Source of the DNA: Zygophlyctis sp. KS116
Lineage: Eukaryota; Fungi; Chytridiomycota
Assembly (NCBI GenBank): GCA_054661495.1
Contig: BAAFSQ010000001.1
Location: forward strand, 30,001 to 62,000
DNA: 32,000 nucleotides
Direction: 5' to 3'
Shown: positions 7-11,752 of the stretch, piece by piece
Numbering within the stretch: position 1 is the stretch's first letter
Layout of the letters: each line of letters opens with the position of its first letter
Notes under the pieces: generated by a model
What the model saw: the letters and a program-made list of their open reading frames with translations, nothing else
Databases searched by the model: none
Told to the model about the DNA's origin: nothing
Made by a program: the position numbers and the translations under genes

Positions 7-448
7 AAACGATTGGGTTCTATTATCTAAATTCACTTCTGCATTCAATCGGGGAGATGTAGTCTTCTTTAAAAATCCACATAATCATCGACAAACATTG
101 GTCAAGCGAATTGTTGCGGTTCCAGGCGATTTGGTGCGAAGGAAACCACCAGGGATCGCAGATCTTTTATTTATACCAGACATACTTTATAATTTCTCAA
201 AAGGGATAATGCATCAGAACTTTGAAGGAGATACCTGGATTGTTGTTCCCGAGGGACATGTATGGGTTGAATCGGATTCAGAAGATGATCGAGTTGTGGA
301 TTCTAGGCATTATGGTCCTGTGCCAATTGGATTAATTGTAGGAAAGGTTGAAATGATCTTATTTCCAATGGACAGATTTGGAAAATCTCTACAAGCTTCA
401 AAGTCTAGAATTGTTGATGAAGGTCGTCTAATTACGAGACAAATCTAG
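7..448 (+). CDS. Mitochondrial inner membrane peptidase (Imp1/Imp2 family, peptidase S26), last exon; 5' part lies outside the window
   Basis: Frame is open from just after the TAG at 4-6: NDWVLLSKF..RGDVVFFKNP..LVKRIVAVPGD (catalytic Lys box) and VPEGHVWVESD..DSRHYGPVPIGLI. Stop TAG 446-448. Confidence 0.88.
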
Positions 449-465
449 TGCCAAAATGACAGCTT

Positions 466-1804
466 CTAATCACTATAATATTCATCAGAGTCATAATTCA
501 AGATATCGAATTCCACCTTGTATCTCAAGAGTCCTCCAATACCACCAAAACCCCTCACAAATTGTGATCCTTCTTGTGATTTGTTTGTGACGAATTCTAA
601 AGTAGTACCAAAGGATTTATAGTTTTCTGCAATCTAAAGTTTAAATTGGTTTTAATAAATACCCATTCCACAATAGTCATCTTATCAACAACTTCCAATT
701 CTACTTTTGTTTCTGAATCTTCAAAAAGTTCTCTATTTGTTTCTTGATCCTTATTTAAAAATAAAACAGTTTCGGATCCTGTTTGAGGATTCTTGAGTAA
801 ATATCGCATAGTTTCAAGATTTTCCCAAATAATCAAAGTTTCAACAGCTCCTAATTCTAATGCCTTGAAAGTATCATCAACACCAAAGCAATATTTTCCT
901 GAATCAATTGAAATTTCATCAAAGTATTTTTGCAGTAATTTCTTTTCTTGGATAAACTTGACATTTGCGAGAAAATCTGCAGAAAGTTCAATCGCCTGAT
1001 TAAAACCATTTTCACCTCCATAAGACACATCCACCACCTTTACTACTTTAGCAGCCAATCTTTGATCAAAATTATCAGACTGTCCCAAGTCATTCTTAAA
1101 ATCAGCTGAACCAGCTAAAATGATTCCTGAAACATTAACCTTATCATTTGTTATATAATGTTGCACTGCCAATTCACAAATTTTAGAGACATAATTGTGT
1201 CTTTTTTCCTCTCTTAAACGTGCAAAACGTAGAGCAGACTGACCACCACGACCATGCTTCTTTGGCAAATCAACACTTAGACGCTGTAAAATTTCTCTAG
1301 TATTTCCAGCAAGAGTACCGAATAAAGTTCCATTACCATCCATTACAATAAATCCAAATTTAGAATCACATTCCAAGAGTTCTGATAGTGCCTCTGTATG
1401 AAACTTGTTATCACACAAATAAAGAGATGTGTTAATAGGCTTGAATGGTTCAAAATCAATATTGACTTTTTTCTCCTTTCCTTCATCAGTTATAATGGTG
1501 CCACAATACACAACCAAGCCATTCGTTGGCACTTTTGGATATAATTTAAGCCGCTGCTGTGTTGAAGTGATTGCCGATAGGACCGATAAACGATTGACTC
1601 TAGACTTGATATTAGATGCAGTTCCATATTCATCAGCCAACATTTTAGAGATCCTTGAAATCTGATCTTTAGGCTAATATTAGGTATTATGAGTACCGGA
1701 ATAATCAGGGATATCATTGAAGTTCCGTTGCCTCTAGCTGCTTCAAGAGACTTTATCAATCTCTTGACTTTCCACATCTCAATATTGGATTCTGTGTCGT
1801 CCAT
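466..1804 (-). CDS. SUP45: Eukaryotic peptide chain release factor 1 (eRF1), 428 aa; exons 1804-1697, 1673-663, 633-466
   Basis: GTS, TASNIKS, YLCDNKF and GGQ motifs, and C-terminal [18 protein letters not shown]. Removing a 23-nt intron (1674-1696) restores SLIIP|PKDQISR; removing a 29-nt intron (634-662) restores VEW|IAENYK. Confidence 0.98.
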
Positions 1805-1872: not shown

Positions 1873-4232
1873 TTAAACTTGAATCTGCTCAATAGAATGT
1901 TTTTGAACAATCAAGACTGAGCAGTTGGAGACTTGATCAATCCATGCTTTTAAGAATCCCTTGTAACTCTTCATTCCGAGTATAATTAGATCTGTTCTAG
2001 AGAGTTTTTCACCTTGAATTGCAATTAGAGAATTTGGAGTTTTAGTAGTGTGATAAGAAATGATAACATTCGAGAGACCCTTAATGAGATCTAGCTTTTG
2101 ATTTTTTTCCTGATTCTCGTCAGAGAGAATATATGATATTTCAATTTGCACATTTGAGCTTTGAACCATGTATGAGATTAAAGAGAATACTTCTTCATCA
2201 TCTTCATTATCAAAGCAAGGGAAGTAGACCTTGTGAATCATTAAAGAATCTTCTTTATGGAAAATATCTTGAGATTCATTTGATTTTGAAATTCCAAATC
2301 CTCTGTCTAAAAAGAGTCCTAAAGTGCATGGGGTACTATTAAATTCATGAGACCATAAATGAACATCAATTGTTGAATTAGTTGATTTGGATATTGTAAA
2401 TGGTAGTAAGATTAGATTGGAATGTTCTTCAATTGAGGCTTTGATAACTGTTGAAGAAAAATCTTGTTTACAAGAAATGGCAGATAAGCAATTCATTTCT
2501 ATACCATTTAGTTGACCAAATGTTTGAATGACAGACATTATGGGATCAGATGGTGTATTTTCATCTTTTCCTAGAGTTGCCATCATCATTGAAGATTCAC
2601 GATCATTGATTTCATTAAATCGTAGAGTACTAACTTTTATCTTCATAGTGCTTGTTCTGAATAACTGGACCAAAGACATTATCGACGGAACTGTTTGTAG
2701 TTTAGGAAGAGATAACAGAATTGATAGTTCATTGGTCAATACAGGCTCATTCAAAATAGTCGCAGTTGAGCCGTGACCGTGTTCCAAAGAGGATACTTTT
2801 TCCATTTGTAAAGACTTTACAGATGCATTAGCATTTTCAGTAGTCGATTCAGGTGGAAGAATGTAAGCGACCAGAGGAATTGTGAAAGCGCTTGAAAGCA
2901 ACATCACTATAACCAACATGGTAAACACAGCTCGAGGAATGATGCCAGCACGAAATCCGATATTCAAAACTAAAAGACCCACATATCCCTTTTGGTTTAA
3001 TAATATACCCATTGCAGCCGAAGATCTCCATGAATGTTCAAAATACATTCCCATTAATGCAGTAAACAGTATTTTTGACAATGAAGAAACAACTAATATC
3101 AAAATCATTAATCCCCAGTCTAATCCACTAAACTCCCCACTAATATTAAATTTTAGAAAACTTACTTTATAAATGCAATGCTGGCCAAGACACCAACCAG
3201 TCCATAATAAATTGGAACAAATAAAATCATGAGAATATCTTCCATTTTCTCTGCAATCTTTATAGAAAATCGATGATTATGAGGAGTCCTTAAACCTACT
3301 AAAAGCGCACCAAATATTGCATGTGCTCCCATCGCTTGAGTAAACCAAGAAAAGAAAAAGACCATGCAAAAAGTTAGAAGAACAGATAATTGAGATAAAG
3401 ATTCAGAAGTAGTAGCCATTCGAGCTATTCTTGTCATAACTATATCTAATATCCACCAAAATAGTATAAATACTGCTAATACAGCATTAAAGATTGCTAA
3501 AGCCTTGTAAGGATCCTGTGAGTTTTCTGCATAAGGAATCAAATACATGAGTACCACCCAAGTCATGATTGCATTGACATTTGAGACATCCCCACTTAAA
3601 GCAGCAATCGGATTTTTGTATAATCTACTATTGGCCAAAATTCTGTTTACAACTGGAAGCCCAGTCCATGCCATACAAACAGCAGTATAGAATATAAAGG
3701 GACCCTGAGCAACAGGAACATAATTGCTTGATAAGGAAGGCAGCAAAGAGTATAAGTACCAGCTGACACCAACAGAGGCAGCTAAAGGTAGTAAGAATAT
3801 ATTACTGGCAGTCAGAAAGACTATTTTCCTTGACTTTAAAAATGAGCTTGGATCTGCTTCCAATCCAATCATAAAGCAAAAGAGCACAATACCAAATTGA
3901 GAAACTGCACCAAGCAGATTTGTTGATGCTAATGACCAAATATTATTTTTATAACTCTCAGCATACAATCCAGAACCCAAGATCATACCGGCTAATACCT
4001 CTGAAACTACTCTATGAGATTTGAATAGTCTATTAAGCACAAAATGCAAAGATCTAGACAAAATAATGATCAGCGCTGCCTGTACTAGAAGAATAGAAAT
4101 TGGCTCATGTAATGGAGTCCCACCATCAAATATCGATGGTGGAGTACCATGAGATCCACTAGAGCCGGTGTGAGCAGTTGCATTGCCTTGAGAGACCTCT
4201 GCAAGCCTCACAGTTGTATTTAAGCTATCCAT
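1873..4232 (-). CDS. KHA1: Cation/H+ antiporter, CPA2 (KHA1/CHX-like); 26-nt intron 3140-3165
   Basis: Multi-TM N-terminal domain with VVSEVLAGMILG, FMIGLE, TGLPVVNRIL, HAIFGA and LLNQKGYVGLLVLNIG, followed by a soluble C-terminal region. The intron joins the two ORFs in frame (FI-N-GEFSGLDWG). Confidence 0.88.
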
Positions 4233-6672: not shown

Positions 6673-8408
6673 CTATCCAATGTTTTCCACTGATAAATCA
6701 AGATGATCTTTACTCAAGTATTCAGGATTCTTAGAAATCCATTCGATTCTAGCAAATTCTCCTGCTTTTCTAACAGCTTCGTCATCTTCTGGAGCAATAT
6801 ACAAGTCGCATTTTGTACTATTAATTAATAAATATAATTTACCATTCAGTACATGGTCCTGGAATGATTCGGAAATGCTAAATTTTAAGTTTAAAAAAGT
6901 CTTACATTGCAAAAATGTGAATATTTTTCTCGTCTAATGTCTGCTCTACATATAAAACACATACTATACTTGCATCTAGGACACTAAATATTAGAAAAAA
7001 GAAATACAGTGATTTTGTTACATCCATCAGATTTGCTAAATGAAATTTTACAGTATGGGCATGTTCGTAATAGAGCTTGAGACATTTTATTTTCCACAAA
7101 GAGTCTAAAACTTGATCTTTCTTTTTCATGACACTCGTGAAAAATCTTCCATTCACTACAACATTTAAGACAACTTGCTTTTTCACATGATTTACAATTG
7201 AAAACAATTGATTTTTCCTTTACTGAATCCCTTAAATTCCTTATTAATTGTTTAAAATCTATAGATTCTAGTCTTCTTTTGATATAAACTGACAGAAAAA
7301 TTAAAAGAAAAACATTGCTAGGATTTAAATAGAGTGTAGCCAAAAAAGAAATTATATAGCTTGAAATAGGAATAATTTGCTTGATCTTTTCTAAATCAAT
7401 AAATTTAGTAATAAACCACTTTTTAAGAGAGAAATATAAAGACTTGTTTTCTGGTACATATTCTTCTGAATAAGAACAAAAAGGACAATTAACTATTCTT
7501 AATCCAGATTTTTTCAATTCTTTTTGAGCCAACATGACATGATATCTCTTTAGTAAATTTTCAGGAACAAATCTAGATAATTCCTTAAAATGTCCTGTAC
7601 ATCCACTTCCCATATAAACACATTTAATTTCATTCCCTGCCATTACACAAGTTCCAAAAAGACATTGATTTACAAATTGTAAAATACAATTTCCACAAAA
7701 CAAGTGTCCTAAAGAACATGCACCCATTTCTTCCCAAGAAAATTCATCAAAACAACATTGACAAGTCAAATTCTGATTACAAGAATTATATTGTTCCTTA
7801 TTGATTTCTTTTGCCAATTCTAAATCTTGTCCTTGTTGAATTTGATTCTCTAAAGATTGAATTTGATCTTTTAATTCTTGATTTTCCAATTGATAAATTT
7901 CAATTTTCCTTCTTGGTATAAAATTCATTAGATTCGACCACCAAGAAGGTCTAATTCCCTTTAAAATACTTTTTGCCTTTAAATAATCATTTGTTTCAAT
8001 AAGAATATTTCCAATAGTAGATTTCCAATGCCAAGGAAATTCATTTAGCAATTGTGCTTTTGCACCTATTAAATAGTCCTCATCTCTAAATAGCATGAAT
8101 TCATCCCATTTTACATTTTTTGTAGAGTTTGAATTTTTAGAATTTTCCAACAGCATCACTGTAATTTCATGAATACTTTTCCCTTGAGATATTAAATTCT
8201 TCAAGCGCAGAGGATCTGAACAAGGAAATCTAGATTTTAAATTCAAAAATTTGAAATTCTTTAAAGAAATTCCAAATAAATTGGGTTTAGTTGGATAATT
8301 TCCTTTTAGTTTTCTTAATTTCTGGACAAGCGGTTTAGATTCAATCTTGTCAAGCATCCATTCTACCCATTCTAGATCAATTTCTTCAAATTCTTCAAAT
8401 TCTTTCAT
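6673..8408 (-). CDS. RNF216/TRIAD3-like RBR E3 ubiquitin ligase; introns 6984-7007, 6878-6905, 6818-6842
   Basis: RING1 (CQCCFDE..CSLGHLFCGNC), IBR (CPFC..CKSCEKASCLKC..HEC) and RING2 (CPYC..KSDGCNKITCPRCKYSMCFICR), plus an RNF216-type tail YSHFCNHFR..PCTECTKCDLY. Confidence 0.88.
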
Positions 8409-8441: not shown

Positions 8442-11400
8442 ATGATGTTGCTATGGACGATTTTGAGTATTGCTTCATGTTTTGCAACTAGCTATACATG
8501 GTAATTTACATCTCTAAGAAAAGGTGGCCGCAAGTCACTGATAATGATAATGTCAACGTGTCAATAATTGCTCCCTGGACAAGATACAAAATTAGAATTA
8601 AAATTGTTGATGATAATGTAAAATGACTGTTTTTATACTAGAATGTGCCTTGCACTCAATGCGCTAAAGAATTTGTAAATGTTGGTGGATGTCCGATTTT
8701 TTCATTGGATGAATTTAATTCTATTACTTTTGGTACATTTAAAGGATGGATTACTAAAATTATAGATAAAGAAACTTTTGAATGGGGGTTGACTTGGAAT
8801 ACAACAGATTCTGGAATAATTAAATATAGTATCAAGAGAAATCAAGTTTCTACAGAGAGGTTTTTCAAGAATGCTCTAAATGATAAAATTGGGATATTTA
8901 ATGTTAATTGGTATGGGGCTTACAAGGATCAATTAGGGATTTGGTCAAGTGCTGGATCTAAACAGGGAGTGGCTATAAATGATATTATATTTTATAAGAG
9001 TATACCTGGAGAATCTAGTACAAAGTTTTTATCGTTTTCACATGTAAATTCTAGTCTTGTAAACTCTTTAATGGCTACTACGGATGATTTTAATAGTTTA
9101 ATGGGATTAGATTTATTGATACCAGATAGTTTAAATGCGGATATTGATAGGTGTGGTACAAATGTAAAGACTGGTTTTGTAAATATTCATAATATTGTGT
9201 CTCTTAAATCATCTTTTCTGATACATGCATCTTCTGGTATAATAGTAGTTCAGAATAATAGTCTGGTTTGATTTTTAATTTTAATTTTTAGAGTCTGGTT
9301 TGGTCTAAAAAGATGGATGGGTGTATTCAAAGTATTCACGTAAAGTCACAAACTAATGATGGATATTCTTCAAGTATAGTCTTTATAGTAGGCGCAGGAT
9401 CAGATCTAAATAGAGTATGGATATATTATGAAGATACTTTAGAGGTTAAAGAGTTATTGGTAAGTTTTTGAACCTTAATAATTAGGATAGTCAAAATAGG
9501 AATCTAGAGAGACTATTTGGAAGCATTGCAAGTCTAAGAATTCTAGATATATCTGTGTCATCACTGAGCCATGATTTGGTAAAGCTTTTAGTACAAAATA
9601 ATGGGGTATATTTTTTGGTTACATTCAATAATATTTCTGTAAGTATTTACAATATTAAAATGTAGTCAAGTTGGGAGATTACATTTAGATTTCCTACAAT
9701 GGTTCCAGAAGGTTATAATTATACATTTAAATTTAACAGTGACTGATACAATGGGGGTCTTTAGATTTAAACGACTTTGGAACTCTTCGACTGATTCAGG
9801 TGCTTTTTTGGGGATAAACTCTTCCTCTTATACTTTTACAAACCTTTCTCTGACTGGACTTGGGTATCATAAATCGATTTCTTCAAGTCTGTTTGTATGG
9901 GGGAATTCAGTTTTCCTTTCTGCAAATGATGGATTAAGTATGTCTTTTGTAAGACATTTCTCTTCTCCAGTTCAGTCCTTTGATGGATCTTTAAATGGTG
10001 ATTATCTATTTAAATTAGCTGATAATCAAGTAAGATTCATTAAATGATTCAAGTAATAGCTTTGGTATGGTCATATTGCCATAGATAGACTGTCGCCGAT
10101 TTTTAGATCATCCAATGTAGCAACTTTGTCAACATCTTTTCAGTCACAGATGTACCAATATAATAATGCAGATGTTGCTACAAACTACACAATAACTGCG
10201 GAATGGAGTTCAACAGACCGATTAGAAATAGAAAATCAGGAAATAGCGGTGGCTGAAAATGTCCGAAACGCTGATAGTTTATACGGGGTAAATAGCAATT
10301 TTGGCTAAAGAGACTTAGTTTGATTGTCCATATGAACGGATTTCATTTGAATACTATGCAGACCCTTTAATTATCTACGAGTAATACGATCACATTCATA
10401 ATTATTAGTGACCAAAATTCTTTAACGGACGTTTCTTTGCCAGTTACCCCTCGCCGTTATTTGGATTTGCCAAGTAAAATCTTTTTGGACTTGAATGGAT
10501 CATTTTCCTTTTCTATTATCATTTCTATTTTTGAAGATATACAAGATATTTCTTCGCTTAAGCTATCATATATCTTAAGCAATACCACTTTTATTACTGT
10601 AACTTCTACAAAAAGAATTCAAGAGGAAAGTCATTCAATTATATATGATTTCAAAATTACTGATAATGGGATGGCCTTGGAACAAGAGCCTGGAGAAAGC
10701 TTTTCAATAACTTCTCTGCTTCTATTTCCTTTTGAATCCAGTTTTGAGTGCATGAACAAACAAAATGCGGTATTCTCCTAAATTTTAATATTAGATACAT
10801 CTAAAACCACTTATCATATATTCTGGTTGCGCTCCCGATCAGAATCTTTTGTACCATTATAATTTCTCAGACCAGGGATGTCCAAATCCAGACTCTGAAT
10901 ATCCATGTATTTATTATGAAGAAGGTATTTATCTTTATTCCTAATTGTTAAGTCTTCTCTCCAGGGTTTCTAATTAAAGATAAACATAATCACAATACAA
11001 CTTATCCTGGCTATTATACGCTTCTCGTAGTTGGGATGGGAACTTCACCTTCAAATATAGTAGAATTTACGGAAACCGAACTTTTCAAATTTAATCCAAC
11101 TAGCAATGGCTCTGATACTTCTCTAATTTGGACTGGCAGTCTCAATCAGTACGATTTCCCCGTGTTTTCGTCTCAAAATACCAGCATTACATGGAAATGT
11201 GAACATAACAGTCCTTGTGGTAATATTATCCCAAAACTAAATAACCCATCTCCATTTATATATCTTATGCTTCAAGCTTCAACTGAAAACGTCAATAGTC
11301 ACTACTCTTACTGTAAATTAAAGAACAGGTTTATTATCAGACTATATGGACTCCCAGTAAAATTCACCACTTCCATTATTATGACTTTTGGATCAATGGG

Positions 11401-11752
11401 ATTCTGCATTTTATTATTGATGGTCTATACGCTCATCAAGCGCCAATCCTTTAATCGTCAAGAAACGATTGCCGGTCTTTCTAAACCTGAACTAGTCAAA
11501 ACATCTGTTACGCAACTTTCAAAGTCCAAAACTCTTAAATCAGCAATGTATTCAAGCGCCTCTAGCGTTTTGGAAGAAGCTAAATCTACATTAGAAAAAC
11601 TTGATCAGGAATCTAATAATTCTTCAGAAGAAGAAGATGCCTTTGAAGAGAAACCTGCACTTGTCGAGGATTCTGTTTTAACTAATCTAATGGAGACGAA
11701 TCGGTTAAGGAACAGAGGACGTTCAGTAATGGGAAAATTGGCAGAGGCTTGA
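8442..11752 (+). CDS. CATSPERG: CatSper channel auxiliary subunit gamma-like single-pass membrane protein, ~1004 aa, 12 exons
   Basis: Signal peptide MMLLWTILSIASCFA. Eleven introns: 8501-8523, 8618-8641, 9266-9291, 9460-9485, 9639-9665, 9712-9739, 10030-10059, 10288-10318, 10381-10408, 10770-10794, 10925-10952. Splicing gives a continuous 3015-nt ORF. Blocks LPSKIFLD, YSGCAP, PCIYYEEVFSPGFLIKD, GYYTLLVVGMG, FKFN..SLIW, WKCEHNSPC, SYCKLKNRFIIRLYGLP and a TM helix match, in order, my recollection of the CATSPERG C-terminus. Confidence 0.82.

Follow-up and report, generated by a model that had tools for sequence, protein, structure and literature searches.

CatSper is a calcium channel best known from the tails of animal sperm. 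An initial annotation of a 32,000-nt stretch of the genome of the chytrid Zygophlyctis sp. KS116 (contig BAAFSQ010000001.1, forward strand; hereafter the window, in whose coordinates all positions are given) had proposed that small open reading frames and unlisted exons splice into a homologue of CATSPERG, the gamma auxiliary subunit of this channel. This raises the question of whether a complete gene is present, whether it belongs to the gamma family and whether it has the company of other CatSper genes. The CATSPERG interpretation was supported: window 8442-11752 (+) is very probably a single-copy CATSPERG orthologue of a chytrid-type fungus, encoding a type-I membrane glycoprotein.

Exon-intron structure and membrane topology

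A gene model rebuilt from the sequence contains 12 exons and 11 GT..AG introns (Table 1). The spliced product runs from an ATG at 8442 to a TGA without an internal stop and has 1004 amino acids, which reproduces exactly the length and intron count first proposed; the gene is real and intact, with all of its introns correctly phased. The joined translation was used for frame and hydropathy checks only, and profile, fold and family searches were run exon by exon.

Intron 6 was placed at 9712-9739 (28 nt) in preference to 9739-9799 (61 nt, giving a 993-aa product), because the stretch cut out by the longer alternative is protein-conserved in L015, a syntenic metagenome contig from a related organism. 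A shortest-path model with the fewest introns was dropped as implausible, its long introns removing conserved protein.

Table 1. Exons, introns and protein regions of the CATSPERG-type gene. Identities are amino acid identities; L015 and L016 (a near-identical scaffold) are metagenome sequences; P0012 is the Entophlyctis homologue, and P0027 and P0030 are further homologues.
Feature	Position	Strand	Description
Exon 1	8442-8500	+	ATG and hydrophobic N-terminus, aa 1-20; L015 has a similar short exon 1
Intron 1	8501-8523	+	23 nt; counterpart first intron in L015
Exon 2	8524-8617	+	aa 20-51; 58% identity to L015 3753-3842
Intron 2	8618-8641	+	24 nt; L015 has a 24-nt GT..AG intron at the equivalent place
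Exon 3	8642-9265	+	aa 52-259; N-terminal domain and beginning of beta-propeller region; conserved in L015 and L016
Intron 3	9266-9291	+	26 nt
Exon 4	9292-9459	+	aa 260-315; collinear with P0027 and P0030; 51% identity in L015, 98% in L016
Intron 4	9460-9485	+	26 nt
Exon 5	9486-9638	+	aa 316-366; collinear with P0012 367-412; 64% identity in L015
Intron 5	9639-9665	+	27 nt
Exon 6	9666-9711	+	aa 367-382
Intron 6	9712-9739	+	28 nt; also 28 nt in L015; start of exon 7 protein-conserved in L015
Exon 7	9740-10029	+	aa 382-478; best-conserved propeller blades; 67% identity in L015
Intron 7	10030-10059	+	30 nt
Exon 8	10060-10287	+	aa 479-554; 45% identity in L015, 96% in L016
Intron 8	10288-10318	+	31 nt
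Exon 9	10319-10380	+	aa 555-575; conserved CP[YF] motif closing the propeller region; 65% identity in L015
Intron 9	10381-10408	+	28 nt
Exon 10	10409-10769	+	aa 575-695; CATSPERG Ig-like domain (Pfam PF22851)
Intron 10	10770-10794	+	25 nt
Exon 11	10795-10924	+	aa 696-739; cysteine-rich start of CATSPERG C-terminal domain; 65% identity in L015
Intron 11	10925-10952	+	28 nt
Exon 12, first part	10953-11362	+	CATSPERG C-terminal (stem) domain, Pfam PF22846
Exon 12, TM helix	11363-11440	+	approximately aa 876-901; hydropathy peak, AF2, mouse alignment
Exon 12, tail and TGA	11441-11752	+	cytosolic, approximately 100 aa, acidic patch; stop 11750-11752

A Kyte-Doolittle scan of the joined product found one strong hydrophobic stretch, the TM helix of Table 1, in addition to the hydrophobic N-terminus. 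AlphaFold (AF2) modelled the last exon at pLDDT 93.2, with one long terminal helix (residues 138-170 of the modelled piece). Hydropathy and model fit a type-I single-pass topology and bear out the large ectodomain and lone TM helix described earlier. The accompanying signal peptide stands as far as the hydrophobic residues 1-20 are concerned, which are probably a signal peptide, with cleavage predicted from hydrophobicity. The tail, described as acidic, carries a distinct acidic patch around aa 956-978, yet taken as a whole it is only slightly acidic (D+E 17 versus K+R 14 in 99 aa).

Conservation in relatives and partner genes in the genome

Exons 2-12 recur in order in L015, where a GT..AG intron of 24-31 nt was found at all 10 junctions tested. 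Divergence from the near-identical scaffold L016 is 3.1% for exons and 6.4% for introns, and indels are absent. Both share the gene order RNF216-like, CATSPERG, PTPA, SNF2, pseudouridine synthase, eIF3c. An eRF1 gene also lies near CATSPERG in Quaeritorhiza and in L013.

Most of the partners expected of a CatSper complex were found on other contigs of the same genome, as the initial annotation had anticipated. A CATSPERB_C match lies on contig C56 (96.7 bits), a single delta/epsilon-type gene on C15 (CATSPERD-E_C, 53 bits), TMEM249 on C627 (44.9 bits) and CTSRT/C2CD6 on C193 (29.7 bits). Four single-repeat Ion_trans genes (C8, C21, C2 and C217) match CatSper1, 3, 2 and 4/1 chains of the PDB, respectively. 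One of the four matches CatSper2 only, the others match CatSper1, 3 and 4 among Cav/Nav repeats, and two score better against single Cav/Nav repeats than against CatSper chains; their assignment to CatSper1-4, made from sequence matches, is tentative. Because these partner genes are present, CATSPERG is not an orphan subunit here.

The sperm-type exchanger sNHE had been named among the genes to look for. A Na+/H+ exchanger gene lies 4 kb upstream of CATSPERG, but tests of its identity as sNHE gave no support. No solved structure matched the C-terminal 411 aa of this exchanger, none of the NHE loci of the genome adjoins a same-strand cyclic-nucleotide-binding domain, and the gene is not retained beside CATSPERG in the relatives examined.

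A decaying or repurposed relic, whether intact by chance or employed for something else in a cell that lacks a functional CatSper channel, is an improbable account of this locus. The 1004-codon frame is open across 11 correctly phased introns, and divergence from L016 is concentrated at third codon positions (2.2, 1.6 and 5.5% at positions 1, 2 and 3). With L015, amino acid identity is 45-68% over the exons, at the same intron positions and with different intron sequences, and the conserved cysteines and motifs are retained. Most partner genes are also present, although two features of that set do lean towards a relic: the candidate pore gene C217 has Ile at the filter position normally occupied by Asp or Glu, and only three canopy-type genes were found (beta, gamma and one delta/epsilon) versus four pore subunits.

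Membership of the gamma family

In the Ig-like domain and stem, two gamma-specific Pfam domains score above their curated cut-offs. Exon 10 matches PF22851 (CATSPERG_Ig-like; E 9.2e-11, 42.2 bits, cut-off 27) just upstream of the stem, and window 10952-11749 matches PF22846 (CATSPERG_C; E 1.1e-21, 78 bits, cut-off 27.6), the only CATSPERG_C match in a six-frame search of the 12.7-Mb genome. Many homologues are matched by exon 11 (phmmer) immediately upstream of their own CATSPERG_C match, and all of the invariant or near-invariant residues of the family are kept (D10, N48, C83, S87, P88, C89 and C121, in the numbering of window 10952-11464, the top row of the family alignment).

Against mouse CATSPERG2 (7EEB chain F, residues 921-1082), the last exon gives E 7e-19 in phmmer, and its TM helix aligns with that of the mouse protein. 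The last-exon motifs that the initial annotation had compared with animal CATSPERG are visible in the comparison with the mouse protein (F.P.FL..D, G.Y.L.VVG, SLIW, W.C..NSPC and YC....F.....GLP). The AlphaFold and Foldseek comparison with the mouse CatSper structure agrees: the only significant match (E < 0.001) of the last-exon model is 7eeb_F (E 6e-11, TMq 0.79, rmsd 3.0 A, 30% identity).

The order of parts is that of mouse CATSPERG2 and human CATSPERG (7EEB chain F; 9UBW chain F). Identity to the mouse protein is approximately 30% in stem and TM helix, and conserved Cys, Asn-Ser-Pro-Cys and Tyr-Cys motifs are common to both. The window protein differs from the mammalian ones in its length (1004 versus 1145 aa), in an N-terminus diverged beyond the reach of the Pfam propeller model, in an unrelated tail, in a gene interrupted by 11 introns (23-31 nt) and in its presumed setting, a fungal zoospore rather than a sperm cell. 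The tail is conserved in close relatives only, and the best matched stretches mostly stop near query residue 160-170.

For the N-terminal half, direct searches were blank: PF15064 (beta-propeller) matched neither the exons nor the six-frame genome translation, PF15020 was likewise without a match in the six-frame search, and exon 3 alone gave nothing significant against Pfam and the PDB. These blanks are uninformative because the models barely reach non-vertebrate members of the family; PF15064 scores 32 bits on Nematostella CATSPERG and approximately 21 bits, below its cut-off, on chytrid homologues. Exons 3-7 are nonetheless collinear with full-length chytrid homologues at 43-46 bits in phmmer, including exon 3 with the Entophlyctis homologue P0012 (residues 98-298, 42.9 bits) and exon 7 with P0027 and P0012 (44-46 bits); exon 7 also matched Rhodelphis, Allomyces and animal CATSPERG. 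A profile built from non-animal N-termini and the window's own exons, without animal sequences, aligned with 7eeb_F residues 161-644, in its beta-propeller region (E 1.5e-17), with CATSPERB next (5e-3), and the CP motif columns of exon 9 align with 7eeb_F in the profile alignment. The AF2 model of the Entophlyctis N-terminus (pLDDT 85.5) has 7eeb_F as its top Foldseek match (E 6e-21, TMq 0.57), followed more weakly by the epsilon, beta and delta chains of 7EEB. Family profiles and the predicted structure of a relative point to CATSPERG homology in this region.

A rival to gamma orthology is that the gene is a canopy-type paralogue, either of the beta, delta or epsilon kind or a fifth member confined to its lineage. 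CATSPERB, CATSPERD and CATSPERE resemble the window protein in overall fold and single-pass topology, and an architecture of propeller, Ig-like domain, stem and TM helix is common to all four canopy subunits; 7EEB chains H, E and G are further matches of the chytrid homologue's N-terminal model, and a faint CATSPERD-E_C match (E 0.029) overlaps the TM stretch. The scores of the gamma-specific Pfam domains lie far above this last match, however, the last-exon model reaches only E 0.085 or worse with chains E, G and H, and in the N-terminal profile search gamma and beta are 15 orders of magnitude apart, in favour of gamma. Sequence and structure scores of the three other subunits are clearly weaker, the genome has separate beta and delta/epsilon genes on C56 and C15, and animal proteins annotated CATSPERG turn up in the same family search. 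A paralogue is very improbable on this evidence.

Foreign origin, by animal contamination of the assembly or recent horizontal transfer, would suit a family best known and best annotated in animals but deserves almost no weight, since the ultra-short introns are of the type found in relatives, base composition is flat across the window, the gene order is shared with L015 and L016 (and the eRF1 neighbourhood with Quaeritorhiza and L013), and the tree groups the gene with metagenome relatives in the chytrid-containing half, apart from the animal and blastoclad groups. The eRF1 of the source genome is fungal and chytrid-like, and the nearest named relatives of the CATSPERG gene agree with this.

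CATSPERG in zoosporic fungi and its predicted role

The CATSPERG orthologue is not new in kind. Homologues were found in at least 15 zoosporic fungi, most of them labelled 'hypothetical protein', and full-length models exist in GenBank for many chytrids and blastoclads (for example Cladochytrium replicatum KAI8808239.1, Zopfochytrium polystomum KAI9325876.1, Entophlyctis helioformis KAI8924729.1, Allomyces macrogynus KNE71993.1 and Blastocladiella emersonii KAI9152507.1). These proteins share the family and architecture of the window protein and align with it collinearly, exon by exon. Over the best-conserved part, the named species are 30-37% identical to the window protein, whose closest relatives, at 45-96%, are metagenome contigs. 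Allomyces is reported to express homologues of CATSPERB, G and D during its sexual stages (bioRxiv 10.1101/230292), and a 2026 atlas of the fungal flagellum lists a CATSPERG orthogroup as restricted to flagellated fungi (PMC13358043). In the literature searched we found no report of a CatSper current or localisation in any fungus.

Two suggestions of the initial annotation are qualified by these records. The gene is hidden in that prokaryote-style callers split it into exon-sized open reading frames, but full-length models of its homologues are already in GenBank. Its spread in fungi is underestimated in so far as the homologues mostly go unnamed; the subunit is nevertheless on record from Allomyces and in a catalogue that covers flagellated fungi. 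Because such genes are already recorded in many related fungi, the finding is solid but ordinary.

In mouse, the beta, gamma, delta and epsilon subunits each contribute a beta-propeller to the canopy roof, gamma-gamma contacts join the dimers and assembly proceeds canopy first (PMC9205950, PMC13484710); a Catsperg knockout has not yet been reported (PMC13484710). The window protein runs, in order, from a probable signal peptide through an N-terminal domain and predicted beta-propeller, an Ig-like domain, the cysteine-rich stem and the TM helix to the short cytosolic tail. By analogy with the mouse CatSpermasome, its ectodomain would form one quarter of an extracellular canopy above a heterotetrameric CatSper1-4-type Ca2+ pore, and its TM helix would sit beside one pore subunit, packed onto the voltage-sensor domain. 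The channel would depend on such a canopy to assemble and to remain stable in the flagellar membrane of the zoospore; Ca2+ entering there would change the beat and so the swimming direction, which gives CATSPERG a predicted role in motility or taxis.

Four pore genes, three canopy genes and the filter isoleucine of C217 might also describe a pared-down, ancestral-type CatSper complex, which we regard as a doubtful reading of the gene set. If it is true, this channel would depart from the mammalian one in canopy stoichiometry and perhaps in ion selectivity, and chytrids would offer a culturable system for asking what the canopy does and how its fourth position is filled.

Understanding of the CatSper mechanism is unchanged by the CATSPERG orthologue described here. 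What it adds is a well-supported full-length member of the family from an uncultured chytrid lineage of lake origin, with a checked exon-intron model. Introns as short as these make both prokaryote-style and default eukaryote gene callers fragment the gene, and, as the fungal homologues are mostly unnamed, domain-based re-annotation with PF22846 and PF22851 would bring out the family throughout the zoosporic fungi. A fungal genome of 12.7 Mb has retained a near-complete CatSper gene set, and this supports the view that the channel and its extracellular canopy predate animals and are a general device of opisthokont flagella.

Gene model and its conservation in relatives

The window (C1:30001-62000 of the assembly) is AT-rich, with about 31-35% G+C, and the six-frame ORF list shows the gene as pieces only. 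A gene model was built by reading the three forward frames and splicing the pieces through GT..AG introns, giving 12 exons, 11 introns of 23-31 nt each and a 1004-aa product with zero internal stops, the same intron count and length as in the initial annotation (11 introns, ~1004 aa). Intron 6 has two readings (see the table); the longer one was ruled out because L015, a metagenome contig with a homologous gene, conserves the start of exon 7 at the protein level. A hydropathy scan of the 1004-aa translation detected a hydrophobic N-terminus and a single strong TM stretch at about aa 876-901, in agreement with the one TM helix predicted initially, and the product contains 17 N-x-S/T sites and 15 cysteines. 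The acidic cytosolic tail predicted alongside held in part: one acidic patch is present in the last 99 aa, but the overall charge is only mildly acidic (D+E 17 vs. K+R 14).

Three metagenome fragments matched the last exon at 54%, 45% and 96% identity in a large HMMER search, and their contigs were compared. L015 (Logan, SRR23867098) has a gene order identical to that of the window and matches each of exons 2-12, in order, at 45-68% amino acid identity, with a GT..AG intron of 24-31 nt at the equivalent site in 10 of the 10 junctions tested; its first exon and first intron are similar, the exon being likewise short. L016 (ENA ERZ19571628) is a near-identical variant in which exons differ by 3.1% and introns by 6.4%, with no indels, and exon differences by codon position (1/2/3) are 2.2/1.6/5.5%. 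At the sequence level, the exon/intron conservation in L015 and the codon-position differences in L016 indicate that the reading frame is under purifying selection and that the splice pattern predates the split from the L015 lineage. With the intact model, these comparisons confirm a real spliced gene.

Locations of features and their database matches (window or contig coordinates; P0012, Entophlyctis homologue)
Feature	Location	Match or remark
CATSPERG gene	window 8442-11752 (+)	ATG 8442; TGA 11750-11752
Intron 6, accepted	window 9712-9739	28 nt
Intron 6, rejected	window 9739-9799	61 nt; 993-aa product
CATSPERG exon 3		P0012 98-298; 43 bits, phmmer
CATSPERG exon 5		P0012 367-412; phmmer
CATSPERG exon 6		P0012 417-429; phmmer
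CATSPERG exon 7		P0012 433-528; 44 bits, phmmer
CATSPERG exon 10		P0012 644-739; phmmer
CATSPERG exon 12		P0012 795-961; phmmer
eRF1 gene	window 597-1643 (-)	
Na+/H+ exchanger	window 1873-4232 (-)	4 kb upstream of CATSPERG
RNF216-type RING/RBR gene	window 6984-8408 (-)	33 nt to CATSPERG ATG
CATSPERB_C	C56	96.7 and 27.9 bits
CATSPERD-E_C	C15	53.2 bits
TMEM249 (CatSper theta)	C627	44.9 bits
CTSRT/C2CD6 (CatSper tau)	C193	29.7 bits
Candidate CatSper1	C8	CatSper1 across full structured length, E 1.5e-21; single Cav repeats score higher
Candidate CatSper2	C2	PDB matches are CatSper2 chains only, E 8.7e-10
Candidate CatSper3	C21	best single-repeat match is CatSper3
Candidate CatSper4/1	C217 (L008) 2043-2336 (+)	matches CatSper1 and CatSper4
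Second Na+/H+ exchanger	C2:61667-62575	9 kb from CatSper2-like gene
Voltage-sensor-only Ion_trans match	C1018 (L009) 139-735 (+)	1.3-kb contig

CATSPERG identity along the protein

A Pfam scan of the exon pieces placed CATSPERG_Ig-like (PF22851) on exon 10 (E 9.2e-11; 42 bits vs. a cut-off of 27) and CATSPERG_C (PF22846) on the last exon (E 1.1e-21; 78 bits vs. a cut-off of 27.6). The last exon also matches residues 921-1082 of mouse CATSPERG2 in the CatSpermasome structure (chain F of PDB 7EEB; 7eeb_F) with E 7e-19. The animal CATSPERG motifs listed in the initial annotation are visible in this alignment, and all seven positions that are invariant (one) or near-invariant (six) across 71 family members are retained (an Asp, an Asn, three Cys and a Ser-Pro pair). 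We modelled the window's own last exon with AlphaFold (171 aa, the 71-member family alignment as input; pLDDT 93.2). In the PDB, Foldseek gave one significant match to this model, 7eeb_F (E 5.8e-11, TMq 0.79, rmsd 3.0 A, 30% identity); E values for the beta, delta and epsilon chains were 0.085 or worse. The original assignment to CATSPERG is thus supported by Pfam domains, sequence and structure.

For the N-terminal 575 aa, the PF15064 beta-propeller model gave no match on the exons or in the genome, and nothing was found for exon 3 alone against the PDB. PF15064 performs poorly outside vertebrates, scoring 32 bits on Nematostella CATSPERG and falling below cut-off, at about 21 bits, on Zopfochytrium and Chromosphaera; the N-terminus was therefore examined through family members. 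Exon-by-exon phmmer searches against the 137 proteins of the large search gave collinear matches, exon 7 also matching Rhodelphis, Allomyces and animal CATSPERG. A profile combining the window's exons with N-terminal sequence from 15 non-animal members matched 7eeb_F residues 161-644 (E 1.5e-17), with CATSPERB second (5e-3). For the Entophlyctis N-terminus, an AlphaFold model (625 aa, alignment of 56 rows; pLDDT 85.5, pTM 0.84) matched 7eeb_F best in Foldseek (E 5.9e-21, TMq 0.57), and the epsilon, beta and delta chains of that complex came next. The collinear matches, the profile and this model indicate that the protein belongs to the CATSPERG family along its entire length, the N-terminus by sequence and, by structure, via a relative only.

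Partner genes and neighbours

Searches of the 12.7-Mb assembly (1175 contigs) found CATSPERG_C once, one delta/epsilon-type gene and the further partner domains listed in the table; PF15020 gave no match in the genome, a null that is uninformative. Eight Ion_trans matches fall at seven loci, four of which look like single-repeat six-TM channels, and these four genes are tentatively assigned to CatSper1-4 by sequence matches. The initial annotation had considered an orphan subunit in a genome devoid of pore subunits; since candidate pore subunits are present together with CATSPERB and CATSPERD-E partners, CATSPERG is not an orphan.

The third pore-loop position is acidic in Cav, NALCN and CatSper repeats (e.g. 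T-L-E-G-W, T-Q-E-G-W). The CatSper4/1-like gene, a predicted ORF, reads T-Q-I-G-W, so the selectivity-filter acid may be missing from one of the four candidates for the pore. On C1018, a coiled-coil-like stretch follows the voltage sensor, a candidate layout that resembles voltage-gated proton channels (Hv1); Hv1 is also a sperm-flagellum protein.

Na+/H+ exchanger genes occupy about seven loci. With this number in 12.7 Mb, the two exchanger-CatSper proximities exceed chance (about 0.1 expected). The window exchanger has no VSD or CNBD match and no sNHE-type C-terminus, no same-strand cyclic-nucleotide-binding domain was found beside any exchanger in the genome, and its linkage to CATSPERG is not kept in L015 or in L013, another metagenome contig with the gene; the sNHE search proposed initially therefore yielded no candidate by domains, neighbours or synteny. 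The companion cyclase search located class III cyclase domains on four contigs.

The RNF216-type gene is head-to-head with CATSPERG, and L015 keeps this tight divergent pair (about 25 nt); the L015 orthologue carries recorded matches to Pfam RNF216 families, and the window ORF has no Pfam match at E 0.001. Given the 33-nt gap between start codons, there is room only for tiny or overlapping 5' UTRs, unless one start codon is not the first ATG.

Origin of the gene and place in the family

The best named matches of the window eRF1 gene are chytrids at 80-81% (Batrachochytrium, Quaeritorhiza, Rhizophlyctis, Gorgonomyces, Spizellomyces), then other early fungi, and named relatives of CATSPERG come from chytrids and blastoclads, followed by ichthyosporeans, Pigoraptor, Rhodelphis and animals. 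In a maximum-likelihood tree of the stem domain, the window gene groups with the L015 and L013 sequences (support 99/92 and 98/90) within a weakly resolved half containing chytrid sequences; the blastoclad and vertebrate groups are well supported and separate from it. Flanking gene order is common to the window, L015 and L016. On the eRF1 affinity, named relatives, tree and shared gene order, CATSPERG is therefore native to this genome and inherited vertically.

eRF1 adjoins CATSPERG in Quaeritorhiza haematococci (L014), lies <=5 kb away in L013 and 7 kb away in this genome; this linkage in three lineages is an old microsynteny of these chytrids and a useful relatedness marker. Several GenBank chytrid eRF1 proteins (P0152, P0156, P0165, P0169, P0214 and P0265) are named 'Electron transfer flavoprotein alpha-subunit', which looks like a propagated annotation error. 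P0003, a MetaClust protein of 1888 aa that the tree places among the animal sequences, contains two CATSPERG_C-like segments and probably represents a fused or tandem gene model.

The suggestion that gene finders fragment the gene holds in part: in L015 and L016 it is called as strings of 50-200-aa ORFs, and several GenBank fungal models are partial, but full-length models exist for many species. Nearly all of the GenBank fungal models carry the name 'hypothetical protein'. Chung et al. 2017 (PMC5362262), with Allomyces among those screened, reported that beta, gamma and epsilon share one gain/loss pattern and are likely older than the unikont-bikont split. Expression of Allomyces CATSPERB, G and D homologues was reported in sexual stages (bioRxiv 10.1101/230292), and a 2026 fungal flagellar-protein atlas lists CATSPER1-4, B, D/E, G, T, EFCAB9 and TMEM249 orthogroups as specific to flagellated fungi and not universally retained (PMC13358043). 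Given these records and the UniProt label of the Allomyces proteins ('CATSPERG C-terminal domain-containing protein'), the window gene adds one more member to a known family, one already described as ancient and as occurring in zoosporic fungi.

The mouse CatSper1-4 pore is covered by a canopy whose roof consists of the beta-propellers of the beta, gamma, delta and epsilon subunits; each auxiliary subunit is proposed to partner one particular pore subunit, as the cryo-EM structure reportedly confirms, and neighbouring dimers are joined by gamma-gamma contacts (PMC9205950). The canopy assembles first and is required for pore assembly, gamma contacts beta and epsilon, and a Catsperg knockout is so far unreported (PMC13484710). 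By analogy, the chytrid protein would serve as the gamma pillar in a canopy of this kind, which would sit on a Ca2+ channel in the zoospore flagellum.
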